From positions 4,774,001-4,838,000 of the forward strand of contig CP075494.1 in assembly GCA_021613535.1 (NCBI GenBank): a stretch of 64,000 nt of DNA, read 5' to 3'. The notes beneath the pieces are model-generated. The model worked only from the letters and a program-made list of their open reading frames with translations, made no database searches and was not told the origin of the DNA. Position numbers and translations under genes: made by a program. The first letter of the stretch is position 1. Each line of letters starts with the position of its first letter. Source of the stretch: Adineta vaga (lineage: Eukaryota; Animalia; Rotifera). This document shows, piece by piece, positions 9,128 to 51,654 of the stretch.

Positions 9128-9306
9128 TTTGTCTGAAATCTGTTCATTTTTCTTGCGCGTCGAAGTAACTTTTAAACCATTCTCATGTACGCTCATCAAA
9201 AATTATTTGCTTTGCTATGCTTTTTTCTTTCAAATATAACAACGATTGATACAGTAAGATCGGTATGAGTGTGAATGCTGTTCACTTTCCTTATCCATAC
9301 CCTTCT

Positions 9307-9341
9307 CTTTCTTTTCTTTTCTTTTCTTTTCTTTTCTTTTC
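9307..9341. repeat. (CTTTT)n microsatellite
   Basis: Directly visible tandem ctttt run upstream of the proline iminopeptidase gene. Confidence 0.85.
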
Positions 9342-9543
9342 TGCTTGTTTCTCTTTCATATAAATATTTGTTGACATCATCCACGACACTATCGTTAACG
9401 TAGCTTTGACGATTTTATCTGAAAGAAATGGTTTTTATGTGCATCACGTAGTCGTTTATTTCATAAGAAAGAAAGTATAGATAGTGATAGTATCTTTAGC
9501 ATTCAATACGTTTCTTAATAATTGTTTCATTTATCAATAAAAC

Positions 9544-10470
9544 ATGGTCGATTCAAATGAAAAGATGATACCAATTGAAACTCCTATTGGAAAATTTAAT
9601 GTTTGGACAAAACGTATTGGAAATAATCCAACAATAAAACTTTTACTTCTACATGGTGGTCCAGGTGCTACATATGAATTATTTGAAACTTTCGAAAAAC
9701 ATCTTCCCAATGAAGGTATTGAATTTTATTATTATGATCAACTTGGATCATTTTCAAGTGATAAACCAACTGATATCAGTTTATGGGCAATCGAACGTTT
9801 TGTTGATGAAGTTGAACAAGTTAGGAAGGCTCTTGGTTTAAATCAAGATAATTTTTATTTACTCGGGCATAGTTGGGGTGGAATCTTAGCATTAGAATAT
9901 GCTTTAGTTTATCAAAAGAATTTGAAAGGTTTAATTATTAGTAATATGATGTGTAGTGCATCTGATTATGCTAAATATGCTAAAGATGTTTTAAGTAAAA
10001 GTATTGATTCACAAGTATTAAAAGAAATTAAAGAAATAGAAGCAAAGAACGATTATAACAATCCCAAATATATGGAATTATTGATACCAAACTTCTATAA
10101 AAAACACTTTTGTCGATTAGAAACATGGCCTGAAACTATGGAACGTGCTTTTTCACATTTAAATAGTGATATTTATATTTTAATGCAAGGTCCATCTGAA
10201 TTTGGTATTTCTGGTTTATTAGAAAAATGGAATCGAAAAGATGATATATCAAATATTGAGATTCCAACACTTATGATTGGTGCAACATTTGATACGATGG
10301 ATCCAGAACATATGAAATGGATGGCAAAACAAGTGAAACATGGTTCAGTTTTAATTTGTCCAAATGGTAGTCATTGTTCTATGTGGGATGATGAAGAACA
10401 CTATTTTCATGGACTTATTCGTTTTATTAAGAGCGTTGATCGAGGTGAAAAACCTAAGGACATCTATTAA
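9544..10470 (+). CDS. pip: Proline iminopeptidase-like alpha/beta hydrolase (peptidase S33), intronless, bacterial-type
   Basis: LLHGGPG, YYDQLG, nucleophile GHSWGG, GPSEF, and catalytic D (FDTM) and H (GSHCS). Confidence 0.9.
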   Translation: MVDSNEKMIPIETPIGKFNVWTKRIGNNPTIKLLLLHGGPGATYELFETFEKHLPNEGIEFYYYDQLGSFSSDKPTDISLWAIERFVDEVEQVRKALGLNQDNFYLLGHSWGGILALEYALVYQKNLKGLIISNMMCSASDYAKYAKDVLSKSIDSQVLKEIKEIEAKNDYNNPKYMELLIPNFYKKHFCRLETWPETMERAFSHLNSDIYILMQGPSEFGISGLLEKWNRKDDISNIEIPTLMIGATFDTMDPEHMKWMAKQVKHGSVLICPNGSHCSMWDDEEHYFHGLIRFIKSVDRGEKPKDIY

Positions 10471-10870
10471 TAATAAAAACTTACAAAGCTATAGTGATAT
10501 AAAATATGGAAATGTATAAGATCGTGATTTGTTCCACTATGGATTTTTGCACATTACTCAATACAATCTAATATAGAATGAAAATAAGATCTATCTGAAA
10601 AGTTCTTTAATAAGGTCAATGTTGTTATTATATAGTAGCTCGACTCAGCCATTTTCTCTATTTGTAGATGGAGATTAGTTTATTTCTGTTTCATATGAAT
10701 CAGAAAATTCTCTCGAGAATTCATCGTTTATGCAATAATTAATGTAGTTTTTATTTCAGAAAAATTTCCCACTTTTAAAATTCTCTTCATATGAACTGTG
10801 TCAGTCTTGTCATCACTAAAAGAAAAATGACAGCTAGATAATCAAGATAAATATATAAGCATACGAACGT

Positions 10871-12422
10871 TTAGTGGCATGAACTTTTGTCAATAGTAAA
10901 TTTTTGCACACGATGGTTTCCACTATCAACCACGTATAAATTACCATCATGATCGAATGCTAAGTCAGAGGGACTATAAAGATGAGTCGACGACGATCCT
11001 GAGCCAGAACCACCTGCAATTATAGGCCCTGTTGCTGCTCCATTTTTCCATCGTGTTACACGATGATTATTTCTTTCAACCACATAGATATCACCTGATT
11101 GGTCAGTAATAGCAGAATATGGATCAAAAGGTGGGTTCAAATAAACATCTTTAGATCCTTCCACAGCGACATAGAATTTTGATAGGTTTTGTTTTAGCTC
11201 ATATACATGTTTGTTGTTTATGTTAACAGAGTAAATAGATCCCTTTTGATCAGCAAATAAAGAAGTTGTTTCATACATACTCGTACCAATTGTTGTCCAA
11301 TTACCTTGTGCCTTTGTCTGTTTCAACAGAGTTGATCCTGTTGACATTGCATACAGGGATCCTTCATCATCTATTGCCACACCAATAGGACTAGATGCGT
11401 TCAAAATAGTATCCGCTCGATATGCATTTTTTACCCATCTTTGAATTCTTCCATTACTATAATCAGTGACATATACTGTTTCAGCTTTATCCACAATAAT
11501 ATCTCGAGGACTGTTTAAATGGGTTCTTTCTTTTCCTTTTCCATTGCCACCGGCCACTATTTCACCTGTGGTTACATTTGGTTTCCATTTAACAACTCGG
11601 TCATTAAGTGTATCTGCTATATATATATTTTGATTATCGTCTATAAAAATGCCATTGGGACGATTCAATCGATTCAATGTCGATCCGGAAGTTAAATTAC
11701 CAGCCACAGTGATACCAACTTTAGACCATGTTGCTGTTGCACAAATACCGTCCTTAGGTCTTAGTGAGGAAGTTGTCGCTGAATAGAAATATTCAAAGAA
11801 AATTTAAGAGTTTCGAATAAGTGCCTCTTAAACCTACTTGTTGTATCAACAGATGTAGTCATTATTGTACTAGTAGCAGTGATGCTCGTTGTTTCAATTG
11901 TAGAGGATGTGGTTGTTGTTGTTGTATTTATCACTATTTGAAAGAAAGAAAGTGAAAATGTAAATCTGATTACATTTTCTCTACTTACTGTTTGATGGTG
12001 GACAAATTTGTTGATTAATCATTAACAATGGATAACAGACGGGAGCACTATGACATCGAGGATGATGCACACATATATGTTCAGGTTTGTCACAAGTGTC
12101 ATCGAGAGCCTTGCATGGAGTCAAACGAGAACAGCTCACCCAAAGAAAACCGCAAACACCAAAATCATCCGCGGCTGTCATAGGAAAACATCCACAAGCA
12201 CTATTGCTTGAACATTGACCATATAGTGATGTTCCATGACATGTTTGACTGTACACTGGCACTATTCAAAAAATACTCATCGATCAACGAAAGAAATGCT
12301 GTAAAATAATCAAACCTGAGAAGCTAAAATAACATACGAATTATTTTAGAGAGATATTGCAGAAAAAGCAATTTTTCTTACCTACAAAAAATGAAGAAAA
12401 GACAATAGATCCGTGCTATCAT
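10871..12422 (-). CDS. Secreted protein: Cys-rich N-domain + Thr-rich linker + NHL propeller; exons 12422-12382, 12323-12316, 12261-11989, 11933-11838, 11778-10871 (441 aa)
   Basis: Signal MIARIYCLFFIFCSFSVPVYS built across an 8-nt microexon. Cys-rich domain (CSSNSACGC...CVHHPRC...CPP) and NHL repeats. Four GT-AG introns of 54-59 bp; total 1326 nt in frame. Confidence 0.8.
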
Positions 12423-13637
12423 TGTCGCTTGATTTTGAAGAATAAAGAATCAAATTGAAAGCGCAATATAAATATATATTCTTAATGCGACACAGATGGC
12501 ATTTTAAATCTTATTTTTCGCATCATTGTCATCTATTAATGAAAAAATGAGAAACTTTCATTTGACTCATTCTTAATCTTTAGGCAAGGAAAATATGCAA
12601 AAATACTCTTATAAATATTTTATTTTGCTATGGTGTGATCTATAGCCAGTTTCAATTGACTAAATATCTATATTTGGATAAATAAAAAAATCTTGAGGGT
12701 GGGATGTGAATGTGGGTGCATGTGAGGGCGTAAGTATCATAAGGATACGTAAGCAACGTCCTCAACCTCAACTATGAAATAGAACATTTGAAAAATCCCA
12801 GGTGATCTCGCAAAACTTTTTATCAGCCATCAAAATAGTGGAAGTCTGAAAAATAAACTCGTACACACATCACGTTCAATATTCAAAGCTATCTACCAAA
12901 AAACAACATTCATCGTAGTACTGAACTTAACTACGCATACACTGTCTCCTCTTACAACTAAAATATATGCACCGTTTCACTATCACTTTAGAATTCAGAA
13001 TAAAATAAAATAACTTATATAAATTAAAACGGAAATCTACATAACGTGCTGAAAGCGAAAATTGTATTTCTACCTTTCTTCTAATTCTAGCAGTTTTATA
13101 CTCTACGTCCCAACTATTTAATAAGTCTTGAGCAAAGTTGGAACGCGTCATGTTTGCTTGACTCACTCTCATCTTGTAAGCGAGAGGTGTGTGAGTATCA
13201 GATTGTTTCTTTCTAGCTTCATCCACATCATAGCCTATCCACATGCACACGCAATATGGTTTAATGTCCGTCACATTTCTTTTCCAATGTGGAGAATAGT
13301 AAAATTAATATTTGATACTTCTAAACCAAAAATGTATTTGTTTTCGTATTGAATTTAAAAAGTTCGAAAAAGATTAATTTATTTCATGTTTTAAATTGAT
13401 TGCAAATAAGCTTTTATAGAAGAAGATAGAAATTTCAAATTATCAATGAGCTACGAAAATGACCATATATCTAATTGAAATTTTTCTTTTTTGACTATTT
13501 TTAAATCAGGTTATTACGATGTTCTAAGTAATTATATTTGTTTATTAGAGATGATAGATATTTTTCTTAATTCTTCAATCGTGATTAATGTCAATAAAGT
13601 AGAACGGTAGAAAAAAAAAGTTCTTAATTAAAACAAT

Positions 13638-16600
13638 TTATTCATTGGTTTGTGTTCCGTTTGTTACCACTTTATTAACGTCTTTCTTTGATCTATTTTT
13701 ATTTAACCATTTGGCAAATATTGTTGCTATCATTGTTTTTCGAAATTCGTTTGTGAATACACTTGAAGGGAGAACATAGAGAAGAAAACCAAGTACTTGA
13801 GGAGTATAGGAAAGAAGATAGGCAATGAGAAGTGTGTGTCGTTTCCAATCACTCAATTGAGAGCAAGCTAAAGTAAATGAGAGAACGGTTTGTGGGAGTC
13901 CAGAAAATACAATTATGATTGGAGTTATGTAGAGTTCTTTCTGTGCAAAAAATTGTTTTTTCAATATTTGCGTAAATATTGCTTTTTCGTTTTTTGTTCT
14001 TGCTCGACTACGAGCGGCGAAAATGATAAGAAAAGTAATAGAAATAATTTGAATGCTGAAAGGCATCAAATAATGCAATAATGTATTGATTCGATTATAG
14101 TTAGCTATAATATTTTGATTGAAATTAGTTACGCACAAGACGATAAGTGAATTTGGACTGCGAACCGTTTGATAAAAGAGAATCTCATGAATATGCATAC
14201 TAAAAAGGATAAGTAGAGTACTTAGACTGATACAGATTGCTATTCGCGAACTCTTTAGCACAGTTGAAGTTGGAAACAGAATCATAAGAAGACGATTAAC
14301 TGCAATCCAGCTGGTTATCCAATATGTGGAGCGAGTGTAGACAGAAAGAAAATAACTTAGTGTTTTACATGACATATTATTGATTCGTCCCAATGATCCT
14401 AATAGAACGTGGATAAATTTGAATAAGAGACAAAATAAACCACATTGATTAAGAATTGTGACAACAAGCAGATAGTTTCCAACACCAAACTTTCGTGGTT
14501 CAGCTCGTTTAAATGTGAGAAAAGAGCAGAAATTAGTAAAAAGACCGAGAATGAATAGACCCAATACCAGACTTATATAAATAGACTGAACAGTTGTAGT
14601 GTAGGAGATTAACAGGGAATCGAGAGTAAAGCCGAATGCTTGTAGACTGAATTCGCAGCGATAGCCTTCGTGACAGGACGGACAAAGACAGATAAAGTCA
14701 TTTGAATTTTTTACATCACCTTTGATACATTTTCCACCTGATAAACATAGATCACAATGATCTATAAACGGATCATGTACGAAACAGTGTACTCCCTTGT
14801 GTTCGGGTTGACATAAACATAGGTAATTTGAATCATAAAAACATATACGAGCCGTATCGTTTCGGCAGATATGATGATACTCAAAAACAGTAGGTATGCG
14901 AGATCTTTCTTCTAAAAAATAAAGAAATAGCAGAATGGGTTTGTCTATTTTTTCAGTTATTCGTGGATATTTTACCTTGAGAGAATAAATTTGAAACATG
15001 CGGACATTTTTCAGGTGTTGAGGTGATATTGATGTTACTTGCATTTTGTCTAAGGTAAAGAATAGAATACGTAGGAGATGTTATTTTGTCATAAGTCTTT
15101 AGAATTGCGATAGGTGGTACAATATTCTCTCCGTGATTGTATCGAACTGTTTGAGGTAACCCGTATAGAACTTGTTGATAAACTAAATGTAATATCATTG
15201 TTGGTAATGTAAAATCATAGAACTGAATGACACTAGATACAATTGATATTGATGTCATATTAATTTCTATACGAATAGCTATCTTTTCAAATTGACATCG
15301 ATCACCATAAAATTGTTTTGCGCATATACAAACAAAGGGATCTTCTCCACTTGGATCATTGGTTAGATGACAAGTTGAATCTAATCCACATGGATTTGTA
15401 TAGCATGCTTCATTTCTTATATGACAGCGAGATCCAAGTCGACCAAACGGACAAATACATAGAGGATAGTCCGAACCGGCAATCAAACCACGTTGGTTTG
15501 GTCGACAAATAGAATCAGAACTACAGTATATTGAACATTCCGAATGAAATTCTGTACAATTATCGCCACTGTAACCAGATTTACAAGAGCAATAGAATGA
15601 ATTATTACGGTTTAAAATTGGTTTACATAAAGAATTTGAGTTACATGGATTCTGAGTGCATGGATTAAATGTAGAGTTCCAGAACCATGATGGACATTTT
15701 AAGATAGTAGCCAAACGAAAAACGGGAAGATAATCAAAGTATATTAGGTAATGAAACGAACCTAGTTCGTTTATATGTGTATCGTTTATTGAATACATGT
15801 CGAAATGAACGGAATAAGGGTGAGGATCATTGATGTCAGTTCGATTGAAATATCGCCGTTGTTTATATTTCAGAGAATAATTTGATCGAGAATAAAGTAG
15901 ATGAAACCGTTGTTTGATAATGTTTTTTTTTTCCAATGAAGGATTAACATGAAATAAATGATGATCGATAATAATGTTTTCAAAACGCAGAGTAACGACA
16001 ACTTTTAATAATTTTGTCAAAAATACATTTGGAAACGTAATTAAATCAAGATGAGTTATAATGGATAAGCGATCCGAGAAAAATTCACATTGAAATCCAT
16101 AATACGCTGGTGGACAAATGCAAAGAGAACCCTTAGCAACTGGATGAAAAATAGGAAAACCTCTATTGCATATGTGCGACAATGAACTTATTAATCGTTC
16201 TGTATCTTGTAAAAATGTCTTTTTCTGATATATTTGCTGCTTATTATTAAAAATATTTTTTGTAATTAAATTCGATGGAAATTTTTGTGCAAAATATTCT
16301 TTTTCTTCTATTTTAACCAACTGATCAGGCTGTTTAGGAAAAAGCAATAAAATTAATGTTTGCTTGCTCTTCTTTCTTTCTCCATGCTTAGAAGTCCGAT
16401 AAAGAATTTTCTCTAACAGAGAATCATGTGGAGAACACCAATGTTCATCTTCTCCATCTGGACACTGGCGCTTTCCATTGCAACGAGCATTTTCTCTACA
16501 CGTTCCATCCAGACAGACAACATCTTCTGTTTCGAAGCACCATGATGCATTCTTGCTTCTGTGAGAACAGAGAAGTGAATTTGTGCATTTATGACTGTTC

Positions 16601-24697: not shown

Positions 24698-25194
24698 TTA
24701 TGGTTTATAACATTTTTCTAAATCCATTGGATAATCCAATTCATAATCAGGAACTTGACCTGTAATCCAATTCGTAAATCTTGTTACAGATGTTGATATT
24801 AATTTAATTGATTTCTGTTCAGAGTTTTTCACATATAATCGATTTACATATTGAGTTGCATGATGTGTTGTATTAAATTCATATTTCCATGTTAAGCAAG
24901 TTCCATCACAATCATTGTCAAATATCAATTCATCATAAATTTTCGTTTCGCCACCAAATGATTGAACTAAATCTGACCAATAATACGTTTCTCTATATAG
25001 ACCACCTCAATTAACAATACATCCTGGTGGTTTAGACATAAAATCAAACAAATAAGTACAACCATCATTACGAACATAAATATCTTGATTACCACCGAAT
25101 TTTTCATCACCCGTATTTGAATACCAAATACGACTTATTTGTCCTGTTTGATTATTAACAGCGAAACGTTCTTGAGCAACACCATCCCAGCAGT
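24698..25194 (-). pseudogene. 5'-truncated remnant of a Cys-containing protein gene of unknown family, with an in-frame TGA at 25007-25009
   Basis: Frame reads CWDGVAQERFAVNNQ...PPGCIVN*GGLYRETYYW...DCDGTCLTWKYEF...CYKP. No start or signal peptide; abuts the kinase relic. Confidence 0.6.
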
Positions 25195-26269
25195 GTCACA
25201 TACCCCGACGATACAACTATATTGACTGGATGTCAATAATTCCTGTATTTGATTGAACCAACATTCAAATTGTTCATTTGGTATCGACGCAGAACGATTC
25301 AATGTATTTCCCAATAAAACACGAACGTCCGGTGATAATTTACTTAGATATCGTTCGAATTCTTTGGCTTGTTCAATGGGATCAAATTGAACGACTGAAA
25401 ATTGATCTCTACGTATTTTCGATGCTAAAACACTAACACCATGAAGTTTGCCCATTCCAAAACAGGCCCCATGATCAATAAAATGTACTTTTAATTTCGC
25501 ATTTTCATTATTCATATCTGTTGTATTCGATGTTGTTATCAAAATATTATGTGCATTTCGATCTGCATTTTGTATGATAGAATCAGTCATTAAAATTTTC
25601 CTTATTTTTCTTGGTAATTCATCAGTTGAAATGATCTTTTCATTTTCTTCACAAACATCCGTATTTAAAGTCGCACGATTATTATGATAGATTGCAATTT
25701 GAACTATATTTATTGGTAAATCCATCTTTCGTCCTAAGACATATGTTAACCATTCACAAGCACAGTACATGTTGCAAGATCTTGTATTTTAACTAAAATT
25801 CTTTCATCTTGAGAATTACGCATCCAGTACGCTGTACAACTAAAACCTTCGTCAATATTTTCACCTTCACATTTCCAATCTGATGTTATTTTGATATAGA
25901 TGGATTTACTTAATTTATTTGTTGTTTGCTTTTGTACTTCTAATTTTCTCTTTACTATTTCGATTACAGATTCGCTAGCATATTTTGATCTTGCGAATAA
26001 TGCAGCAGTTAGAACTGTACCTTCAACCATTGTTTTAATAGGACCACGCATAAATGCAACAATATTATTAGAAAGATGAACTTTTTGATTCAGTTTTGAT
26101 GTTGTATTAGAACTAATAAATTCAACAATTATTTCTTCTTCAATTTCCTTGAACTATATTCAAAAAATGCTTGAAGTTTTTGTTGATAATTGTTCGAAGA
26201 ATGACTTGCAGGGCTGTTTTCTTCATATGCTGCTTCTTTATTGTCACCATCTGTCTCCGGATGAACCAT
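25195..26269 (-). pseudogene. HipA-like / PI3-PI4 kinase-like atypical kinase, frameshifted and apparently 3'-truncated
   Basis: ILVKIQ lysine, EWLTYVLG helix, NADRNAHNIL catalytic loop, FIDHGACFG. Frame breaks near 26155 and 25770. Confidence 0.7.
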
Positions 26270-28416: not shown

Positions 28417-29954
28417 TTGATGTTTTTTCTTGCTAAAAACAAAATTTCAAATAAAATTCGCTCTTCTATCTGAGAGAACAATGCAATGGGATATCGACCA
28501 GATGTTATTCGAAAAGAACGTTTTACTTCTAAAAAAATCATTCTGATATTTATTATTGTGTTTTTAGACTATTGTGTATGGCCCTCTCATAGAAAGAACA
28601 TCGAGTTGCACGATTTATTAAAAAAAAACATTATCGGTGATTTCCAGAAAAGAATGAAATTCGGATCGAGATATCATTTACTTGTATAATGATATAACTA
28701 ATAGCAATATTAAAAATGAAGAAAATTGACTTGTTGTTTTCTCGGCTCATTATTTATAGAATAGCGTCAACTTGACTAACTCAATAACTTTTGCTGTAAG
28801 CCATCAGAAAATACTGACGCAAAGTCCGTTTTGTCATATAAAAATAAATTTGTTAGTATTACTATTCTTTCATTAAAAATCTTAATGGTGTAGATGAGAG
28901 ATATAGGCGCATTAGTACCCATTCTAACTAGTTCATTCTTGCTCGAGAAGACTTCCAAATTGACATAAGAACGTCTCTCTTACATTGCGACACACATGCA
29001 TAGAAAAATTGGATGAATTATTCACCTAAAAAACAACCATTCAAAGATGATATCCTTATTGGAGAATCTTTAGACGTACAAGAATCTGATCGTTTGAATA
29101 AAACACAAAAAGAATTCAAACAATTACCCACTCTATTATTGCGTGATCTCCTTTATCAACGTATTTTGATGTTGTTTTTTATTTAATATTAATATGCAAA
29201 ATTGAAATAAAATACGTGTGACAAGCTATTGTTTTCATTTGAATAATGTCCGCTTCTGATGAATATCTATCAACTAAAAAGGTTGAGATTTATTAACAAG
29301 CAAGAAACAAATGCGGTATGGCAAGAATGAAAATCAGTTTTTCGTCCGTTTTCATTGTCTCGGGTTCGATCATTGGAAAAAATAAATGCTTGCATGAATG
29401 CATTCATCACCTCATCTATTAATATGTTATGTTTGTTGTGCAAACAAACAGATGACTGAGAAGCAAAAGATTTATAACTAATCATGTACAACAAAGAATT
29501 AATTAAAGAAATCATCATTGACAAATGCAAACGTTTCACTAGTTTTGTTTGCATGACATTTTTTTCTGTAAAAGCATTTACAAAAATCTATATTGGTGAT
29601 GCAGTTTCATCTATGATCGTACATATTTGGAGGAGTGAACGAAACGAAAGATAAATATTACCTAGATCATGAAAAATAGAATACTAACCAAACTTTCTAG
29701 CTGGAAAAGAAAGCATTCAGTAAAAGAAATGAATATATATGATTAATCGATCAAATTTCTTCCTTTGGATCTTTTTTCGTTCTGCATTTTTATTTTATTC
29801 GATCGAGGTAATTCACATCCAGGCTATTAATTGTTCTATGAATCTATGTCGAATCAACTTATCGTATTCATTCAACTAGATACTATTCGAACAAAGAACA
29901 AACAAAAAACATGATATCATTTCACTTATATCATCATCTTTCGATGCATATCCA

Positions 29955-29990
29955 GTCACGTGTGTCTTTTGTTCTCCACACACTATATAA
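29955..29990 (+). promoter_or_regulatory. E-box (GTCACGTG) plus TATA box of the diapausin-like gene, mirrored in the right arm
   Basis: GTCACGTG at 29955-62, TATATAA at 29984-90. Probable 5'UTR intron about 30028-30092. Confidence 0.55.
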
Positions 29991-30155
29991 GCCGATCATT
30001 TAGACTAAATTCAACATTCATTCGAAGGTATATTTCACTCTCTACTCGTCTTATTCATCGTTTACTGACCCATCTTTGCTTTTCTTTTTTAGTTAATCTA
30101 CAACATTCACATATTCTCTAACTCTCTCTTAATTAATTAATTAATTATTCAAATT

Positions 30156-30400
30156 ATGTTTCGTTTCTTGTATATGTTAGTTCTTTTGGCTATCAGTAAG
30201 TATATTCTTTTTCTTGAATCGAACGTTGCCAAATGAAGAAATGTATTGTTTGTATTTTAGTTGTCAGCCTTGGCTTTGCTGCAAAACGTTTTGCCGTCTG
30301 TGATCCACCATGTCAAACAAATGGTCATGTTCCAACATGTTGTAATTCGCATGGTTATAGTGATGGTTTTTGCAGAAGTGGATCAGCTTATTGCAACTGA
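30156..30400 (+). CDS. Diapausin-like secreted 6-Cys antimicrobial peptide, copy 1 (59 aa); exons 30156-30195, 30261-30400
   Basis: MFRFLYMLVLLAIIVSLGFA-AKRFAVCDPPCQTNGHVPTCCNSHGYSDGFCRSGSAYCN. 65-bp GTAAGT..TTTTAG phase-1 intron. CD-x2-C-x8-CC-x2-HG-x5-C-x2-G-x2-YCN pattern. Confidence 0.88.
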
Positions 30401-31249
30401 TCAATATTATCATGATTCATGAAGATATTCATTAATCTTTTTTTCTTTTTGTTCATGTGTAGTGTAATCAATACTTCGATTAATGTGTATAATTAGATGA
30501 TAGTCAAATATAAAACGTATTATTCAATATAATAAATCTATGATTAGAATCTAATTTCTTTTCTTCTCAAAATGACTTTTGAAATGATATGACGGAGATA
30601 GTAGAATATACAGAAGAACAGAGGACCTAAAGATAATATCTAAGCGTAATGTTGTATTGTACAGTTGTGAAGAATTAACTATATTTATCATTATTTACAC
30701 GATAAAAATAATTTTCAGAGGTTTGAGCATGGTCATTCGATGTTTATCGTATACAACATCAGACTGCAAGATCAACCAGTGAAGTGACAATAACTAGCAA
30801 AAGTACATTTGATAAGCCTTCATTTAAATTCATCTCGTGACTATAAACAATATAAATGTCTATATATCAGTCAGTTCTATCTGCATTTATATCAAATAAT
30901 TAAAATCTGCTGATGTGATGGTAGAATTAATTTCGGAAAATTAGAAAACATTATTCATAAAGACTTCATTCGATAAAAGTTGTTTCACATCGAATGTAGT
31001 AATTTTGTTCAATGGAACTCAACAATAACCTTAGTCTACAATTCAATCGTTTCTGAATCTAATTTCTTACGACAATAATGATCAAAAAATAAAAGTTTAT
31101 TTCTAATCATAGATTTATTATATTGAATAATACGTTTTATATTTGACTTTCATCTAATTATACACATTAATCGAAGTATTGATTACACTACACATTAACA
31201 AAAAGAAAAAAAGATTAATGAATGTCTTCATGGATCATGATAATATTGA

Positions 31250-31494
31250 TCAGTTGCAATAAGCTGATCCACTTCTGCAAAAACCATCACTATAACCATG
31301 CGAATTACAACATGTTGGAACATGACCATTTGTTTGACATGGTGGATCACAGACGGCAAAACGTTTTGCAGCAAAGCCAAGGCTGACAACTAAAATACAA
31401 ACAATACATTTCTTCATTTGGCAACGTTCGATTCAAGAAAAAGAATATACTTACTGATAGCCAAAAGAACTAACATATACAAGAAACGAAACAT
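31250..31494 (-). CDS. Diapausin-like peptide, copy 2 (identical CDS and intron)
   Basis: Exact reverse complement of 30156-30400. Confidence 0.88.
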
Positions 31495-32497
31495 AATTTG
31501 AATAATTAATTAATTAATTAAGAGAGAGTTAGAGAATATGTGAATGTTGTAGATTAACTAAAAAAGAAAAGCAAAGATGGGTCAGTAAACGATGAATAAG
31601 ACGAGTAGAGAGTGAAATATACCTTCGAATGAATGTTGAATTTAGTCTAAATGATCGGCTTATATAGTGTGTGGAGAACAAAAGACACACGTGACTGGAT
31701 ATGCATCGAAAGATGATGATATAAGTGAAATGATATCATGTTTTTTGTTTGTTCTTTGTTCGAATAGTATCTAGTTGATTCGACATAGATTCATAGAACA
31801 ATTAATAGCCTGGATGTGAATTACGTCGATCGAATCAGATGTTAAAAAAACAATATTTTGCTGTTGAACTCTATAATGCACTAATAGGTTGAAATATTTT
31901 CACATAATTATATTAATTTTAAAATTATTGAAATATGAAGAAAAAATTCATTTTTCTAGAAGATTAATGTATATTACGTGTTTTTCTATACTAAGATGTA
32001 ATTCATTATTATATCTGTGAATTGTATTAAATATATTCTAACAGCGTATTTGTTTTATTTCGAATATTTTGTAAAGAAGAAATCATACATTTTCTTAGCT
32101 TATGCTGTTCGAAAATAAGTAACGAAGAGATGTACTGTGAATTGAAAACAGATTTTTTTTCAGTCAAATGTTACGATAGAAGAAAAAAGAGAATTTGTTT
32201 TTGTCAACCGCAAAGTCTTTCTTCGATAACGAATGAAACTTTCTCTTATTCAAACAGTATGGATAAGACAAAAAAGTGCTTTTCATCCTTTCAGAACATA
32301 AAACTAATTGATTGAAGTATTCAGTGACGGTAGACAATAGTGAGACAGAGAAACTTTGTTTGTCGACGTTGAAATTAATTTCTCTTGAAGTTCGAATATT
32401 TATCCCCATTGTGACACTTTAGATGGAGTCAGTTTGTAGTTTTTTAGTATCCCTACCAGTTTCATGTTTAACTTTCAATAAGAATCTCTCTTTATAG

Positions 32498-35302: not shown

Positions 35303-37168
35303 ATGAATCGATTTGAAGTAATGGACCAGTTTGTCGACGTTCAAAGTGATTTAACAGATTTGATGTGTAATGAATATATGAAAAATCATCCACAACAATA
35401 GAATCAAAATGTTTATATTCAAACTGAACAGATGACAAATGATTGTCGAGATCTATTTAGAAGAATAGTAGAAAACGACTGTCAATTAAATTTCAATGAG
35501 AGGAGAATTGATCAAATAGAACATGAAGTTACTGCTGCTACTTCTACTACTACTGTATTCAACGATACAGTAGAAGTAAATCCTCGTGTCGTGGAAATCG
35601 ATCATTATGAACTACAAAAATTAACGAACATCAGTAGTATTGATTCCATTAAGATGAAAGTAAGTCCTATTGAAGGATATACTAATGAGCCGTTGTTGCC
35701 ATTGTCTAAAGCATGTGCTCCACTGAATAATATCCTTCATAATTTATCGTTCTATGTTCAGCAAGCAATGGATGAAACGTTGGAGCAACCTGCCGATGAA
35801 TTGACAGTGGATGAGAGTGCTGCAATTCGATTATATACATTGGAATGGGAACGACCGTATCGAAGTCTTTATTCAATGCTTAATTTTCATTTAAAAGAAA
35901 GTCACTATTCAGATCTCGAACCATATTTTAAATATTTAAAATTATTTTTAACTGCCCTTGTTAAATTATCATCTGTTCTATCAATGACTATCTGGCGAGG
36001 AGTAACGAAAAATTTAAGTGCAGATTTTCCATCTTGTACTCAAGTAACATGGTGGGCATTTTCCTCGTGTACAACGGAGATGACTGTTCTGGAGAATAAT
36101 ATGTTTTTGGGTAATACCGGTGATCGAACATTGTTTTCTGTCGAAGCTATCAATGGTCGAACTATAGTTGCTCATTCACATTTTGTTACTGAAGATGAAA
36201 TTCTTCTTTTACCTGGTACTCAAATGATAGTTCAATCTCAATTCAGTCCAGCACCCGATCTTCATATCATTCATTTGAGACAAGCGATACCAAATCAAGT
36301 ACTATTAGAACTTCCGTTCGAAGGTACTCCTATACTTTTCCATTCAATATATGCTACATTGTTCTTCTAAGTTTATTTAGGTGCACGCATCTGTATCCAA
36401 AAGTACAGTAAGTAAAATCTTCTTCTTTGAACTATATGTGTTTCGTTTAATTATATCAGACGTCAATGGTATCGTAAGAAAATATTCATTATTCCAATGT
36501 GCTTTTTCATCTTGTTACTCATTGGAGGTATCATAACAAGTTCTATTTTAGGGACAAGATCGAAAATGACTTCGAAAGGTAACATGCTTCACATGAAAAC
36601 ATATATATTATATCTGTTTTGGTGTCCGTGTGTAACAATCCGTTTAAAGCACCAACTTTCTATAAAGGCTGGGACAGATCCCAAATCAATAACAATCGGC
36701 CACTTTCGCAACAACAAACAATTAGATATTGTTGTGACAAACAGTTTGGATTACACTGTAGCGATGATTTTGAACACGGGAGACGGGACATTTCAGAATC
36801 CAGGAAGTATTCCCGTTGGCAGAGATCCATGTTTCGTCGTATCAAGTGATTTTAATAATGATAAAAATTTAGATCTAATAGTAACCAATAGCTTGGACAA
36901 TACTATCAGTTTATTTCTTGGAATTGGAAATGGTTTGTTTGAAACTCCGGTAGCGTATATAGTAGGTCGAGCTCCAGTTTATATAATATCTGATGATTTT
37001 AATAATGATAAAAATCTAGATTTAGTCGTGGCTAATCGAGATGACAGCACTATCAGTGTGCTTTTTGGTTATGGCAATGGGACCTTTCAAATTGGTTTAG
37101 AATATGGAACAGGATCATCTCCGTTCTATCTTACATCTGGCCATCTTGTAGCTTTTTCTCAACATTGA
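35303..37168 (+). pseudogene. Disrupted ART - transmembrane - FG-GAP/VCBS repeat gene
   Basis: ART motifs IWRGV / FSSCT / TEDEILLLPG, a TM (IFIIPMCFFILLLIGGII) and FG-GAP repeats DFNNDKNLDLIV. In-frame TAG 35399-35401, apparent lost AG acceptor near 36620, frameshift near 36665, repeat array ends abruptly. Confidence 0.75.
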
Positions 37169-40231: not shown

Positions 40232-43078
40232 ATGACCGCACATACAATAAAAATAATCTGGTACGACGTAGATCCTATCGACGAAAATGTTTACCATCAT
40301 TTAACAAATTCTATCTTTCATTATTATAATGATCAACTCAAATGTGTTGGATATATTTCATCATTGCTCAAAAGTGAAATTATATTTTTAATATCTTCTC
40401 CTTCGTCTATAGTTGAAATTTTACCAGAAATTCATGGATTAAGACAGTTAGATACTGTATTCATCTATTCGCGAGAACATGACTATCGAATAGAGAAAGA
40501 TTTCTTGGATAAATATTCGAAAATCATTGGAATATTCGATCGATTAGCCGATTTGTTTCAATCAATCGAGGAGAACTTTGATTTAGCAAAAAAACAAAGT
40601 GAATCATTTCGCTTCTATGAGCAACATCAGAAATCAACTCGTGATTTATCGAACGAATCAGGTTCATTTCTATGGTTACGTTTATTCAAAGATATGATTT
40701 TGAAATTACCTCATGATCAACAAGCAAAACAAGAAATGATCGATAAATTAAAAGAATTTTATCGTAATAATAATCATCAATTGAAATTAATTGAAAAATT
40801 TTCACAAAATTACAAATCAGAAGATGCTATTTCTTGTTATACAGGTCAACCATTTTTATATAAACAACTTAATCGTGCTTTACGAACTGAAGATATTGAA
40901 TTACTTTACAAATTTCGTTATTTTATCTCTGATCTTTCAAAAAATCTCTTTCAAGAACATCTATTATTAAAACAAACATTGGATGGCAAATTGAAATTTT
41001 ATCGCGGAGTGAAATTAGCAAATGATGAAGCAAAAAAGTTAAAAGATAATGTTGGACAGCTTATATCAACGAATGGTTATTTTTCTACAAGTTTTTTGAA
41101 AGAAATTGCTTTAGCATTTGCAGATAAATCAACAGAAAATGAAACAAGTACTTTGTTTGATATCGAATGTGACCTTGGATGTGTCGATTCGGTTATAATG
41201 GCTTCAATAGCTCATTTAAGTACAAATCAAACCGAAGAAGAGGTTCTGTTCGATTTGGATGCAGCATTTGAAATTCTATCCGTAACTAGAGATCTGTCAT
41301 CAAATATTTTAGTAGTAAAAATGAAAGCGACTGATGAAGGAGCAACACTTGCAAAGGAACATATTCGAGAACATGATAGACAATTACTAGGAATACACCC
41401 TGTTCTATTATTCGGGCGCCTTCTTGGTGATATTGGTCAATATGAGAAATTGAAAGAATATTTTCATCGTTTAGAAGCGAATCCAAACGGACAGGATCCT
41501 GCCTCTATTCATCACTATTTGGGCGATGGTTATTTCTACGAAGGAAACTATGAAAGAGCTCTAAAATATTATCAAGATGCGTATGATATGATGATCAATG
41601 CCAAACCATCACGTGATTTTGCTTCGACATTTCCATTAGCTCAAATAGGCGCAATTTTCAGTTTGAAAGGGGACCAAGACAAAGCTTTAGAATATCATAT
41701 ACGTGCGTTTGAAATTCGAAAAATTCATTTGGAGCATGCCTCTTTAACAAGATCAATGGAAACTATTGGATTAATTTATCATAGACAAGGTAAGTACGAT
41801 CAAGCATTGAAATATTTGAAATCATCACTTGAAATACGAGAAGCGTATCTTCCTAGTGAACATAAAGACATTGCTCGTTTACTGAGCAATATTGCTTCTG
41901 TCTATAATGCTATGGATCAATTAGATACTGCATTGGAATATAATGAACGAAGTTTGAAAATCAACAAAAAATGTTTGCCTGGGGGACACAATAATATTGC
42001 CTCAGATTTGAGCAGTATTGGATCAATTTTATCTGATCAAGGACGATATGATGAGGCTTTGGAATATCATCAAAAAGCTCTACAAATTCGTGAAAATATC
42101 TTTCTTAATGGACATTTGAACATTGCGTCAGATTTACGTTATATTGGATATATTTATTATCAAAAACAAAACTATTCACTTTCTCTTAGTTATTTCGAAA
42201 GAGCTTTGAATATCCGAGATGTTTCGTTTCCCGATGTGAAAGATTGGACTTTAGTACGTATTCTAAATCACTATGGACATGTTTATGTAAAATTACACGA
42301 ATATGAGAAAGCATTGACCTATCACTTACGTGCACTTAAAGTTACCGAAGAAATATTTCCTACCGGACACTCGAGTATTACAGATTGTTTGACTGATATT
42401 GGTATTGTTTATCGTCATATGAATAGTTATACGAAAGCATTTGAATATTATAAAAGAGCTATTCAAAATGAAGAACAAAATTGTGCAGAAACAAGTTGGA
42501 TCCGTATTGCTAGAAATTATGATAGTATGGGTATTTGTTTATTCAAGCAAGATGATGAAGAAAATGGAATTACATATCGATTATTGGCAGTAAGAATTCT
42601 CGATAAAGTTTATCCTCGTTTACAACATGCGAAAGTTGTTGATTCAATTGGAGATATATGTTTTGTTAAAGAAATGTACGATGATGCTTTAGAATGTTAT
42701 TGTATCAGTTTAAATATCAAATTAAAATATAAGAAGACGAAAAATGATATTGATTTAGCTGAAACTCTACAAAATATTGGAGATGTTTATTTCGAAAAAG
42801 AAACAGAAGAACATTGGAAAAGCAATGAACAACATCAAATTAAAGCGAGATTTTATTATGAAAAGGCACTGACTATTTATCTAACACAGAAACATGAAAA
42901 GGCCATTCATATTCTAAATCATATTGGATCAATTTATGAAAATATAAGTAAATACCATCTTGCACTTCAATATTACAGACAAGCAATAGCAATAGCAGAA
43001 AAGGATTTTCCTTCAGACGATGCTATTAAAGAAACAAGTATTGATAGTATTGCTCGAGTGAAATGGTTGTTACGCTAA
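40232..43078 (+). CDS. ART domain + TPR array protein (948 aa, intronless)
   Basis: FYRG / FSTS / EEEVLF catalytic signature, followed by more than 10 kinesin-light-chain-like TPRs (GxYDxALxYxxxxLxI). Confidence 0.9.
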   Translation: MTAHTIKIIWYDVDPIDENVYHHLTNSIFHYYNDQLKCVGYISSLLKSEIIFLISSPSSIVEILPEIHGLRQLDTVFIYSREHDYRIEKDFLDKYSKIIGIFDRLADLFQSIEENFDLAKKQSESFRFYEQHQKSTRDLSNESGSFLWLRLFKDMILKLPHDQQAKQEMIDKLKEFYRNNNHQLKLIEKFSQNYKSEDAISCYTGQPFLYKQLNRALRTEDIELLYKFRYFISDLSKNLFQEHLLLKQTLDGKLKFYRGVKLANDEAKKLKDNVGQLISTNGYFSTSFLKEIALAFADKSTENETSTLFDIECDLGCVDSVIMASIAHLSTNQTEEEVLFDLDAAFEILSVTRDLSSNILVVKMKATDEGATLAKEHIREHDRQLLGIHPVLLFGRLLGDIGQYEKLKEYFHRLEANPNGQDPASIHHYLGDGYFYEGNYERALKYYQDAYDMMINAKPSRDFASTFPLAQIGAIFSLKGDQDKALEYHIRAFEIRKIHLEHASLTRSMETIGLIYHRQGKYDQALKYLKSSLEIREAYLPSEHKDIARLLSNIASVYNAMDQLDTALEYNERSLKINKKCLPGGHNNIASDLSSIGSILSDQGRYDEALEYHQKALQIRENIFLNGHLNIASDLRYIGYIYYQKQNYSLSLSYFERALNIRDVSFPDVKDWTLVRILNHYGHVYVKLHEYEKALTYHLRALKVTEEIFPTGHSSITDCLTDIGIVYRHMNSYTKAFEYYKRAIQNEEQNCAETSWIRIARNYDSMGICLFKQDDEENGITYRLLAVRILDKVYPRLQHAKVVDSIGDICFVKEMYDDALECYCISLNIKLKYKKTKNDIDLAETLQNIGDVYFEKETEEHWKSNEQHQIKARFYYEKALTIYLTQKHEKAIHILNHIGSIYENISKYHLALQYYRQAIAIAEKDFPSDDAIKETSIDSIARVKWLLR

Positions 43079-46811: not shown

Positions 46812-48673
46812 TTATTTATATTTTTGACCTCTTAAATAATCAGTCATTTGTTGTTGTTCTTGCTCATCAAGAGTCTCAGGAAAAAGTGGTGCACCATCTA
46901 TGGCTGATGAGTTTGTCTTGAGAAAATCGTTTCGATGATGAAAGAAATGAATAAGATTTGATGCAACATAGAGTACAATTTCCATTAGAATACAGATGAT
47001 AAACAATGTTGGAAAATGTTTTGGATTATGATCCATTATAAAACCTATAGTTATTAAACAATGCACGATAAATTCATCATTAAGTCAGATGTTTTCCTAC
47101 CAGCTAGTTTTTGAAATATGATTCCACCAAGTGCTGAACCAGAGTAAAGAAACGCAATGAGTGCAGGTGTAAATTTAAGTCGTTCATTAATGAAAGCAAG
47201 TGATAGTGGAAACATTGATGCCATTGCTAAACCAGTAGCAGCACCAAGAATGAGTAAACTCGTACTTGTCAAACCAATGTTCCATACAAAAATAAGCCAT
47301 GTAAATGCGAGACATAAACTGCCAAACCAAATGATATTCAATAGGAAGAAAGTGGAAAAGTAAACAGCAAGAATTGCAATGATTAATCGACCAATCTATA
47401 TCAGAAAAATATTCCTTTCTATCATTCATTGAATAAAAAACAAATCTCGAATATCTACCGAATCTGTTAACCAATACAAAACATTAGTCCAACTAGCAAA
47501 ACTATTCGATAGATTGAATTGATCGGATTTAAGATAGGAAAAGAGAAATGTTGGAAATGTTTGCTCATTTCCACCAATTAATAAGATGTAACAAAAAAAT
47601 ATTATACAAAGTATCAAACCATATTGAAAATGTCCATGACCAATTGTTCGAGGTGAATAGGGTGAAGATACTTCTTCAACTCTCGAAACTTCGCTATTTT
47701 CTTGATTGTCAGATAGTGTACCATAATTAAACTAAACAGTCTCTATGTATCAATATAAACATAAGTCGTTATAATATAATATTACCTTATGTATTTCTAG
47801 TTTTTCTTTTTTGTTTTTCAATTCTCGAATAGAGAAAAACAGATGGCCAATGGCCATCAAAGAGCATAAACTTCCTGTGGTTATATATGGAATACTGATA
47901 TAGAAGCTTGCATTTCTCGTTGAATTCATGACTTCATTACTCGTACTTCTAACTGATGACATATTCTGTGTGAGAAATGGACGAACAAGTAGATTCGCGG
48001 AGAGAGCGCCAATTCCATAGCCTATACGAACAGCATTTAGTGGTGCCACTGAATTAATACCCCACATTGTAAACAAAATATGAGTTCCACCTATATCGCA
48101 AGAAAAGAGTATGTTTTCACTCCATGATCGAATGAGACTTGAACAGTATGTACTGACCTAAATCGGTTAAACTTTGAGAGATTCCTTGAAAGAAAAATAA
48201 GGTACTCATTAATATCATTGATGTAACAAATGGAATAGCGAACGTTACTAAAAGAAAAAAAAAGATCATCAAAAGCAATTGTCTATTTTTTTGGAGTGTG
48301 TGAGAATTTCTTACCGATTGCTGGTAGGATAAATCCACAAATCAAGACAATATACGGATATTTGTCAACAATATCTTGTAGAATAATCCCAAGAATATTT
48401 GTAATAAGATAGCCGAAACTTCGCGTTGCAAGTACTGTACCCATTTCAGTATAGTTAACATTGATGTTTACTGCTAATGTTGGTAATGTTGGACCAATTA
48501 ATTCCAAATGCCAACTCTACATACAAATATAGATAAAAAAAATATTTGTCACTTTCTTAACTTACCATCACAAGCCATGTTAGAAATAGATATCCAGTTT
48601 GAATTAAATTCCAGGGATGAATTAAATAAAGTTTAAAGCCTAGCTGTCGTTGGTTCTGAGATTCGATTAACAT
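46812..48673 (-). CDS. MFS transporter (MFSD4/FucP-like), multi-exon, paralogue 1
   Basis: ELIGPTLPTLA, LTDLGGTH...WG...APLNAVRIGYGIGA, GGNEQTF. Hydrophobic exons separated by about 55-bp introns. Confidence 0.85.
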
Positions 48674-49129
48674 CTACCGCTTTTTTTTTATCGACATTAG
48701 TTATAAAGTAACTTGATAGTATAAAGCAAGGAAAGTACCACCTAACGTTACACCACGTGGTTTTGTAAAATACAGGAATAGACTCGATGCACAAAAAACA
48801 CATCAAATCATCGTTGAGGTATGCACAGAAGATTTTCTTTTTTTCCTCTTCATTACTTTGATTTACCTATACGTTACAAAAAGGTAGAAACTATCGATAT
48901 GCATCATTTCATGTGACAATGACAATACAATTTCGATTCTCTGTTCTATAAAGAGCGCTATATTATCGGTAGTGGAAGCTGTTGCGATGAGAGAAATTCT
49001 TTGTTGATGATAAAAATATATAATATTCGACACAACATAAAGAATTATTATGACATGAATACATATACCATAAGTATTGCAGGAAAGTATAGTTTATGCA
49101 TTATAATCCATAATAATGCCTAGAAAATG

Positions 49130-50515
49130 TTAGATATATAGAAGATATTCATCTCTCAATTCATAAGAATTTTACCAGCTATTTGTCTTAATACAATTCC
49201 TCCGAGTGCATTTTCACATCATAGCGAGCAAAGCAACAAGTACAGGTGTTACATTCAGTCGTTGATTAACAAAACCAATCGATAGAGGAAATGCAGGCGA
49301 AAATAATAGACCAGTTGCTGCGCCAAGTATGAATAGAGTTGTTTGACTCATACCAATTATCACTTCAAAAGTAAACCATGCAGTTGCAAGACTTAAACAA
49401 GCGAACCAAACAATATTCGGAAAAACATATGGTGATAAGCATATAGATAGGATCGCTGCAAAGAATCGACCGATCTATAGGAGAAAAGAAGTCATCCTCT
49501 ATTAGATCAAGGGATTATACATACTGTATTTGTTGACCAAAATAAAAGAGTAGCCCAACTTGCAGCACTATTGGATACATGAAATTGATCGGATTCGAGA
49601 TAAAAGAGAAAAATAATGCTGTAAATGTTTGATCATTTCCAACGACGAAAAGTATATAAAAGAAGAATATGATCGAAAGAATTAAACCATATCGAAAATG
49701 TCCATAACCAAATGTTCGCGGTGAAAATCGAGAAAATTCTTCTTCATTTTTCTGTGGTTGGATATTACCTCTCGACTTGTGAGTTTTTGTTGTTGATATC
49801 TCAGTTCTCGAATAGCGAAGTAGGCACGTCTAACAGCAGTGAGCAGACAGAAAGTTTCTGTGATTGAATACGGAGCAAGAATATTTTAATTTTTTTGTAC
49901 AGCATGATTTAGTACGAGTGTTGTGTTATAAGCATAGAGTTGTTAGTAAGGTTATTTTGTAATATCTCTCGTGAAAGAAATGGATGAACAAGTAAGTTAA
50001 CGAAAAGAACACCGAGAACATAGCCTACACAAGTTGCACTTATAGGTGTTGCTGAATGAACATCCCATATTGTCAATCAAATTTGAGTTCCACATATATC
50101 AGTAGAATCTGATTGAGAGATTCCTTGAAAAAAAACTAAGCCGTATATTAAGAGCAGTGATGTCGTAAATGGAATCACAAACATTGCTAAAGTAAATAAA
50201 TTATTATGAATATATTTTTAATCTCTATACATATTTCTATTTACCAATGGTAGCAAATATAAAGCCACATGCTAAAAGTCCATATGACAATTTTCGAACA
50301 ACTGTTTGTAACATGATATCAAGAATACTCGCAGTTGAATAACCAAAACCTCTTGATACCAGTGCCGAATCCATGCCACAGTAATGAACATGAACATTTG
50401 CAGCAAGATATGACATTGTTGGAGCAATTGCAATTCGATATGGAAAGGCTTAAACAGAAAATAATCGTTCATTTTATTTACTTATTCAATAAAAACATTT
50501 ACTCGATATCAGTAT
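49130..50515 (-). pseudogene. Decayed MFS transporter paralogue 2
   Basis: Collinear homology with both neighbours (GTQI*LTIWDVHSATP, GAATGLLFSPAFPLSIGFVNQRLNVTP) with stops and frameshifts. Ends approximate. Confidence 0.8.
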
Positions 50516-51654
50516 AATCTCATGCTAGACTGTCGTTTCATTTAGTTATTTTTTTCTGTTTTTAATTTGATTAAATAGTTCTAATTAGCGAAAAAGGTAT
50601 ACACATATATCAATGAATCCTTTGAGTGCGGAATGTGTACAACTGCGAAGATGCTCTTTTGATGAAAATTCCCTACGAAAGAGAAGAGTGAATTATTTGT
50701 ATAAAGTCAAATTCGCATCCTTCAAAACTAACTCACTACTTATGCTAAAAGATACGTCACTTTTGAGATTTTATGATGTTTTTAACCGACAGAATCGGCA
50801 TTACTTCACCGTCTAAATAACATTTAGCAAATTACTTTCCAAAATGATGAATTACCTATAGATCATGACAATGTAAAACTTTTCTGAGAAAAATTGTACA
50901 AATCAAACAATCGTTTATTGATATTGGGAATATATCAGGTAAATTCATTGGTTTGACATCGTTTGAACGAAAAAGTCTCTTGCGCCGTTCTGTCACCCTA
51001 CAAATTATTCACTATCAATTTTCTGAAGTCTTGTCCATAAATACAGCTAATTTATACATCAGCAGGACCTACCAGGATCATTCATGTTAAAACCAGATAA
51101 CCAGTTGCGATTAAATGCCCTGTATGACTGACTTGTCGGTATCATAAATCGAAGGAAAATATCGTCTCTATATTGATATATATGAATACGCATGATAAAA
51201 TGAAAAAGAAAAAAAAATAGAAGAGCTGTTCGTCACACATGAGCAAAATCATTGTACTATTTCAATCATTTCTGCATACTTGTATATACAATCAAACGAT
51301 AATGGAAGTCGATAAGCATGTTTGATAGAGAACACGTACTATTTGGATTTCTGCTTCATTCACATCACTCTTTTCCTATATATCTATATATTCATAACTG
51401 TAGGTTGTTTTTCATTAAATAAACTCATTTATCTTATTCAAGTTTCTCATAGATATTTTTTTAAGAGAAGAGTAACGCACTATTTTTGATAGACGGTCGT
51501 TCATTTGATAAACGTCTGTATGTAAACTTGATTTACGATATTGAGAAATGAAAATATATAACTATTCTTTTTCAATATAAAATATATGACAAAAGTATTT
51601 ATGCTCATCTTTATTGTTCAAATGTATTGATTGAATAATTGAAGAATCTGAATT

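Follow-up and report, generated by a model that had tools for sequence, protein, structure and literature searches.

Does a gene that stands twice, in mirror image, on a chromosome of a bdelloid rotifer owe its second copy to a device that guards it against decay, or to a recent duplication of the ordinary kind? The question is raised by a palindrome on chromosome 5 of Adineta vaga (16.9 Mb; contig CP075494.1 of the six-chromosome, 100.8-Mb assembly GCA_021613535.1), which lies in a window of 64,000 nucleotides at ~4.8 Mb, with a GC content of ~30% throughout. "The window" denotes this whole stretch (positions 4,774,001 to 4,838,000), and the coordinates of features at the locus and around it are counted from its first nucleotide. 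The initial annotation of this sequence described an antimicrobial transcription unit duplicated tail-to-tail, and proposed that arm-to-arm conversion in non-recombining DNA would supply the gene with a built-in repair template. The palindrome is real: two mirror-image gene copies with identical proteins occupy a 2-kb stretch. We consider it likely that the locus is a genuine, young and local tail-to-tail inverted duplication of a diapausin-like gene, which would have arisen recently in the A. vaga lineage through an error of repair or replication.

Structure of the palindrome

The left arm (29797-30549, forward strand, 753 bp) holds a complete gene unit, comprising an upstream region, a TATA box, a 5' untranslated region (5'UTR), a two-exon coding sequence (CDS), a 3'UTR and an AATAAA signal. 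The right arm (31101-31835, reverse strand, 735 bp) is an inverted copy of this unit, 18 bp shorter and with 5 substitutions, and a spacer of 551 bp (30550-31100) separates the two. The same coordinates come from repeat finding, from alignment of the arms with MAFFT and from a DNA search of the whole genome, and they reproduce exactly the arm and spacer lengths first reported. In the MAFFT alignment, the arms are 99.3% identical, with 5 substitutions over 735 aligned positions (0.68%), at 29807, 30417, 30426, 30454 and 30501, and one 18-bp indel. The indel corresponds in the arm alignment to a segment present in the left arm only (29854-29871, forward strand), which is flanked by two TCAACT repeats.

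A DNA search of the 100.8-Mb genome found the arm sequence in two copies only, both at this locus, and gave no second match to the spacer, which therefore occurs once. The spacer contains no sizeable open reading frame (ORF) and no Rfam family; the sole match in an Rfam scan of 28.5-33 kb was a sub-threshold CRISPR-DR6, which we take as chance. The outer flanks are unequal and each consists of unique sequence, in which neither a target-site duplication nor a common direct repeat was found, and no runs of N were found at the locus. In the window, the palindrome is the only repeat of at least 150 bp and at least 85% identity, far beyond what chance would give. No such repeat was present in twenty 10-kb grid samples from chromosomes 1-3, and structures of this kind are therefore rare in the A. 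vaga genome (0 in 200 kb sampled). Two familiar sources of inverted repeats were considered and rejected. A transposon or foldback element with terminal inverted repeats is excluded because there are only two copies in 100.8 Mb and no target-site duplication, and the spacer is unique. A retrocopy is excluded because both arms retain the CDS intron and the promoter, and no A-tail is present.

The gene carried by each arm

The TATA box of the left copy (29983-29993, forward strand; mirror 31657-31667, reverse strand) is preceded in both arms by ~185 bp of retained upstream sequence. Downstream of it lies a putative 5'UTR intron (30028-30092, forward strand; mirror 31558-31622), which we recognise from its good GT and polypyrimidine-AG signals. 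As bdelloids use spliced-leader (SL) trans-splicing, the AG at 30092 could equally well be a trans-splice acceptor. Coding exon 1 (30156-30195, forward strand, with the ATG at 30156; mirror 31455-31494, reverse strand, with the ATG at 31494) encodes the start of the signal peptide. It is followed by a 65-nt, phase 1 GT..AG intron (30196-30260, forward strand; mirror 31390-31454) and by exon 2 (30261-30400, forward strand), which encodes the end of the signal peptide, the six-cysteine mature peptide and the stop. Exon 2 of the right copy (31250-31389, reverse strand) is identical in sequence. Between the AATAAA signal (30531-30536, forward strand; mirror 31114-31119) and the inner end of the arm there are 13 nt. 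The two units thus converge at a distance of 551 bp, each with its promoter, CDS and AATAAA and each ending just past the polyadenylation signal, as the initial annotation had it. The transcription unit in each arm is apparently functional.

Splicing read from the left-arm DNA yields the database protein P0002 (59 aa), which served as the full-length query, with positions 30263-30397 (forward strand) as the exon 2 query. The National Center for Biotechnology Information (NCBI) annotates the two copies as hypothetical proteins of Adineta vaga, I4U23_023307 and I4U23_023308. The two annotated proteins differ in their start: the right gene begins at the second Met (P0001, 53 aa) and the left at the first (P0002, 59 aa), on identical DNA. 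Because the predicted proteins of both arms are identical, the doubling of gene dose proposed earlier is a fair inference.

A divergent diapausin as product

The 59-aa product has a hydrophobic N-terminus with a predicted helix at residues 2-18 and is predicted to be secreted; its mature part of ~40 aa carries six cysteines in the pattern C-x3-C-x8-CC-x9-C-x6-C. The published diapausin motif is C1-x3-C2-x9-14-C3C4-x9-11-C5-x6-9-C6 (PMC10051947), and the product follows it except in loop 2, which is one residue below the published range. PF08036 (diapausin) is the only Pfam family that the product matches (12.0-12.6 bits, E 0.15-0.23), and 4 of the 6 A. vaga paralogues match PF08036 and no other family (best E 0.0084). 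A profile of these paralogues found 16 proteins among 1.84 billion protein representatives. Its matches include proteins of Rotaria magnacalcarata, R. socialis and Adineta steineri, contigs from ENA/Logan, and the protein P0017 (E 1.7e-4). P0017 provides the link to the known family: it clears the Pfam diapausin cut-off (30.4 vs 25 bits on PF08036) and matches PDB entry 2e2f, 'Diapausin', at E 2e-6. In BLASTP it shares with P0002 53% identity over 34 aa that span all six cysteines, and hhalign aligns the paralogue profile to it with 98.1% probability (E 8e-14). A profile search of the PDB in which the paralogue alignment was the query missed 2e2f, and a word-index protein search returned two A. 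vaga proteins only with the product as query and only its neighbour with P0017.

Structural comparison is compatible with this family but does not single it out. The AlphaFold2 (AF2) model of the product (mean predicted local distance difference test, pLDDT, 76) has a helix at residues 37-43 and a hairpin at 49-58, and its best structural matches are defensin-like peptides (Z 3-4.4). Against this model, 2e2f aligns with Z 3.0 and a root-mean-square deviation of 2.4 A over 39 of 41 residues, with 38% identity, the highest in the list, in which defensin-like peptides reach Z 4.4. Foldseek returned weak defensin-like matches only. Judged from its sequence profile, the product is a divergent diapausin, a member of a family of insect antifungal peptides, and it may have antifungal or Ca-channel-blocking activity. 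Like known diapausins, it combines a signal peptide with a mature peptide of ~40 aa, the CC..HGY..G.C motifs and profile links to a Pfam-passing member; it departs from them in its rotifer host, as well as in its sub-gathering Pfam score and shorter second loop. The antimicrobial identity given in the initial annotation can thus be made more specific, as diapausin-like, through the profile link to P0017 and 2e2f. In the portion of the diapausin literature covered here, diapausins are described from beetles, moths, flies, springtails, some soil nematodes and an iridovirus, and horizontal transfer is discussed. Rotifers were not found tied to diapausin in that portion, and the papers that combine diapausin and bdelloids are, by their titles, on nematodes or springtails.

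Paralogues in A. vaga and related assemblies

The family extends over three further A. vaga chromosomes. The chromosome 1 cluster (L010:3870-6340, equivalent to G000:C1:17314869-17317339) consists of three genes in the orientations + - +, which form one tail-to-tail and one head-to-head pair. Identity among these genes is 98-100% over a segment that begins ~35 bp before the TATA box and ends with the CDS intron; near the intron end it falls sharply, to 50-75% in exon 2 and the 3' parts. This mosaic looks like the outcome of segmental gene conversion or of duplication of a 5' module. Two further genes lie head-to-head on chromosome 6 (L011:4176-5008, ~1.599 Mb), with 85-90% identity in the 5'UTR, exon 1 and intron and 50-65% in exon 2. 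One of them has five cysteines only, the second Cys being replaced, and may be a degenerating copy or a variant. At both loci, therefore, the homogenised part is the 5' module while the peptide-coding exon diverges. The single unpaired copy, on chromosome 4 (L012:4900-5225, reverse strand, ~4.959 Mb), is a pseudogene, in which the TATA box and signal exon are intact and a TAG stop and a frameshift fall at the position of the CC pair; it shares the CDPPC subtype with the chromosome 5 gene. In A. vaga, each of the four adjacent pairs (one on chromosome 5, two on chromosome 1, one on chromosome 6) is inverted, an outcome expected 1 in 16 times by orientation alone. On chromosome 2, the homoeologue, no close counterpart of the gene or its neighbours was found, so the duplication cannot be dated relative to the whole-genome duplication.

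Related assemblies present a different arrangement. A CDPPCQT-type gene occurs once on each of the related contigs L014 and L015. No convincing synteny between these contigs and the A. vaga locus was found, and the orthology of their copies is judged from peptide similarity. Contig L016 carries two direct copies, one of them broken, and contig L017 (ENA ERZ26165376, 1.4 Mb) carries five diapausin-like genes at 8300-14500, in direct tandem and ~1.4-1.6 kb apart. No inverted repeat was found around the gene copies on any of these four contigs. Given the single or direct-tandem copies of these related assemblies, the palindrome is probably confined to the A. vaga lineage. A search for other A. 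vaga assemblies, by way of contigs encoding P0001 or P0002, gave no match, nor did an exact 30-mer spanning the junction of spacer and right arm in the metagenomes of the Joint Genome Institute (JGI).

Several other members of the family were seen in passing. The signal-exon and intron layout on L017 resembles that of bdelloid genes, and its GC content is 48%, well above that of known Adineta or Rotaria genomes. Contig L039 (ENA ERZ25067493) carries at 6618-8189 two intronless, Pfam-passing (PF08036) diapausins, head-to-head and 1.2 kb apart, which are 94% identical in the signal-peptide region and 79% in the mature part. The chromosome 5 gene has a close relative on a short contig (L018; ENA ERZ12298651, 904 bp, GC 31%) from a Sphagnum peat-moss metagenome (PMC9584203), the source of which is presumably a moss-dwelling bdelloid. 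Finally, the 96-aa product P0003 of Rotaria magnacalcarata (CAF1947581.1) holds two tandem copies of the peptide domain; either gene prediction has fused a direct tandem pair, or the protein truly has two domains, as some nematode diapausins are reported to have.

Age and origin of the inverted copy

In A. vaga, alleles diverge by 1.7% on average and homoeologues by ~13% (PMC8494291). The divergence between the arms (0.68%) is below the allelic mean and far below that of homoeologues. Given this low divergence and the lack of a palindrome in the related assemblies, a recent local inverted duplication is the simplest account of the locus.

The boundaries of the arms coincide with short self-complementary motifs. 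A mini-palindrome, ATTAGA-A-TCTAAT, has its centre exactly at the inner boundary, and the self-complementary TCGATCGA is located at the outer arm ends. In addition, a 14-bp direct repeat, GAATCTAATTTCTT, straddles the inner end of the left arm (30547-30560, forward strand) and recurs at 31055-31068, 32 bp before the right arm. From these junctions we infer an origin by template switch or fold-back; neither fold-back priming nor insertion with a target-site duplication fits all of their features. A repair or replication error, in the form of fold-back or template switching at the short self-complementary motifs, would have created the inverted copy and left two intact, convergent genes with identical proteins. 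Its immediate effect would have been a doubled dose of one defence peptide. The sequence from promoter to stop would have been kept identical by constraint or by one or more partial conversions between the arms. A standing function as repair template is possible.

Distribution of differences between the arms

The few differences between the arms are unevenly placed. There is none in the promoter, UTR, introns or CDS up to the stop, and the two chromosome 5 genes are accordingly 100% identical from promoter to stop. All four inner substitutions fall in the 3'UTR part of the arm, which is 2.7% diverged (4/149), and the fifth, at 29807, lies near the outer arm edge. The longest substitution-free run covers 610 of 753 bp, which in simulation has P = 0.0014; a rough estimate that treats ~230 bp as constrained raises the P value for the uneven distribution to ~0.07. 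The pattern suggests at least one partial event of arm-to-arm conversion, or constraint, and taken together with the mosaic on chromosome 1 it makes partial conversion between inverted copies plausible. The arm-to-arm conversion invoked in the initial annotation is therefore upheld in part: the uneven differences (P ~0.001) and the mosaics of the paralogues fit it, but selection and small numbers could also explain the pattern on chromosome 5.

Weighing the explanations

A second reading is that the palindrome is old, held near-identical by recurrent exchange between its arms and selected as a built-in repair template against decay. This would account for the confinement of arm differences to the 3'UTR and the outer edge, and it gains from the paralogues: conversion is difficult to avoid as an explanation of the sharp mosaic on chromosome 1 (98-100% vs 50-75%), a similar but weaker mosaic is seen in the chromosome 6 pair, and the sole unpaired A. 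vaga paralogue, on chromosome 4, is a pseudogene. Yet no orthologous palindrome was found in the other assemblies examined, and the comparison of paired with unpaired survival involves seven paired genes, at three loci, and a single unpaired copy, which is dead. Moreover, conversion on chromosomes 1 and 6, if real, leaves unprotected the exon that encodes the mature peptide. The rationale of non-recombining DNA, on which the initial annotation built this proposal, also falls away. A. vaga has six homologous chromosome pairs with tracts of loss of heterozygosity that result from recombination (PMC8494291), and since its chromosomes have homologues that recombine, the rationale is inapplicable here. 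On balance, we regard an old, converted palindrome as an unlikely explanation. That the palindrome is instead an error of assembly, in which two alleles or a chimeric read were joined in inverted orientation, has two points in its favour: the arm divergence (0.68% plus the indel) lies within the allelic range (1.7% mean), and palindromes previously published for A. vaga proved to be artefacts (PMC8494291). However, the arms measure 0.75 kb and lie in continuous, N-free sequence with a unique 551-bp spacer and differing unique flanks. In a fold-back chimeric read the flanks, too, would be mirrored, and a mis-scaffolded haplotig would not stop at the limits of one gene. Furthermore, the diverged inverted pairs on chromosomes 1 and 6 (84-99%, in parts only) cannot be allelic artefacts. 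We therefore judge an artefact very improbable. Still less credit goes to the idea that the locus is chiefly a source of hairpin or double-stranded RNA, produced by convergent readthrough and serving, for example, small-RNA regulation of the gene family. On geometry alone, with the units converging across 551 bp, RNA that covers both arms would form a stem of 735 bp. Nevertheless, each arm ends with its own AATAAA, both CDS are intact and identical, which suits a protein-coding role, and the other family members are too diverged in DNA to be targets, given that the genome search returned no other DNA match.

The young inverted duplication of a diapausin-like gene that we favour also has points that weigh against it. 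Clean microhomology is missing from its junctions, which do carry the 14-bp direct repeat and short palindromes. There are only five substitutions between the arms, and purifying selection on the promoter and CDS could explain much of their unevenness. As regards the gene, loop 2 of the product is one residue shorter than in the published diapausin motif, and its Pfam score is under the diapausin gathering threshold (12-12.6 vs 25 bits). Lastly, the structure of the locus is read from a single assembly, and the expression of its two copies is predicted from that sequence.

Comparison with known palindromes

The young inverted tandem duplicates of animal genomes are the closest parallel to the chromosome 5 locus. 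They share with it adjacent, near-identical copies in opposite orientation, a short unique spacer, unique flanks and a lack of mobile-element features, and they differ in nothing essential; the A. vaga case is special in its bdelloid host, its cargo of a defence peptide and a unit that ends ~13 nt past the poly(A) signal. The locus looks like an ordinary young inverted gene duplication, with no proven self-repair device. The ampliconic palindromes of primate Y chromosomes are maintained by arm-to-arm conversion (Rozen et al. 2003, as cited in PMC7953838). The likeness to these lies in inverted arms of >99% identity, a unique spacer, intact genes and an uneven divergence compatible with conversion. 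Y palindrome arms measure roughly 10 kb to over 1 Mb. By contrast, the A. vaga arms measure 0.75 kb, carry one gene and have a recombining homologue, and no orthologous palindrome, by which concerted evolution across species would show, was found in the assemblies examined.

The palindromes described from A. vaga in 2013 are absent from the chromosome-level assembly, where they are attributed to erroneous scaffolding of haplotypes (PMC8494291), and a survey of 26 parthenogens found palindromes without a major role (PMC7953838). The premise of the initial annotation that palindromes are a feature of asexual animals is weakened by these results, as it rests largely on the 2013 artefacts and the survey runs contrary to it (PMC8494291, PMC7953838). 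Those structures resemble ours in species, in being inverted repeats on one chromosome and in having been read as a consequence of asexuality. They were, however, collinear blocks of many genes, whereas the chromosome 5 case involves a single gene inside continuous sequence. It is of another scale, and cannot arise by mis-scaffolding of haplotypes. After the withdrawal of the larger palindromes as artefacts, the locus provides, in the chromosome-level A. vaga genome, a clean, small and checkable case of an inverted duplication that bears a gene.

More interesting leads than the palindrome itself are the family-wide pattern of inverted pairs and mosaics and the presence of diapausin-like genes in bdelloids. 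Tentatively, we propose a model in which A. vaga diapausin-like genes evolve as inverted-pair cassettes. In this model, conversion within each locus would keep the modules of promoter, signal exon and intron alike as the mature-peptide exons diversify. The palindrome on chromosome 5 would represent the youngest stage; the unpaired chromosome 4 copy is dead. We hold this model to be possible but rather doubtful. If true, it would concern the first diapausin family described in Rotifera, and would widen a distribution that is patchy across animals of soil and moss and has led to proposals of horizontal transfer. Together, the chromosome 5 palindrome and the clusters on chromosomes 1 and 6 make up a small system in which the ectopic gene conversion of a bdelloid could be measured. 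The diapausin-like family, for which we saw no mention of rotifers in the literature searched, also bears on resistance to fungal pathogens and on the debated horizontal spread of diapausins.

Neighbouring genes in the window

Other features of the window are of a different kind. On one side of the palindrome lie a gene with an ADP-ribosyltransferase (ART) domain (35432-36370) and a gene that combines ART with TPR (40232-43078). The ART ORF has at least 128 matches over all six chromosomes and belongs to a very large, expanded family. Further along, at 46938-52932, three diverged direct repeats with 63-78% identity and a spacing of 2.0-2.8 kb are probably a tandem gene triplet. On the other side, at 25138-25770 (reverse strand), lies a PI3/PI4-kinase-like ORF of 211 aa, the sole gene examined for decay in the neighbourhood; it has four paralogues elsewhere in open frames of 473-629 aa, and may be a truncated, decaying copy.

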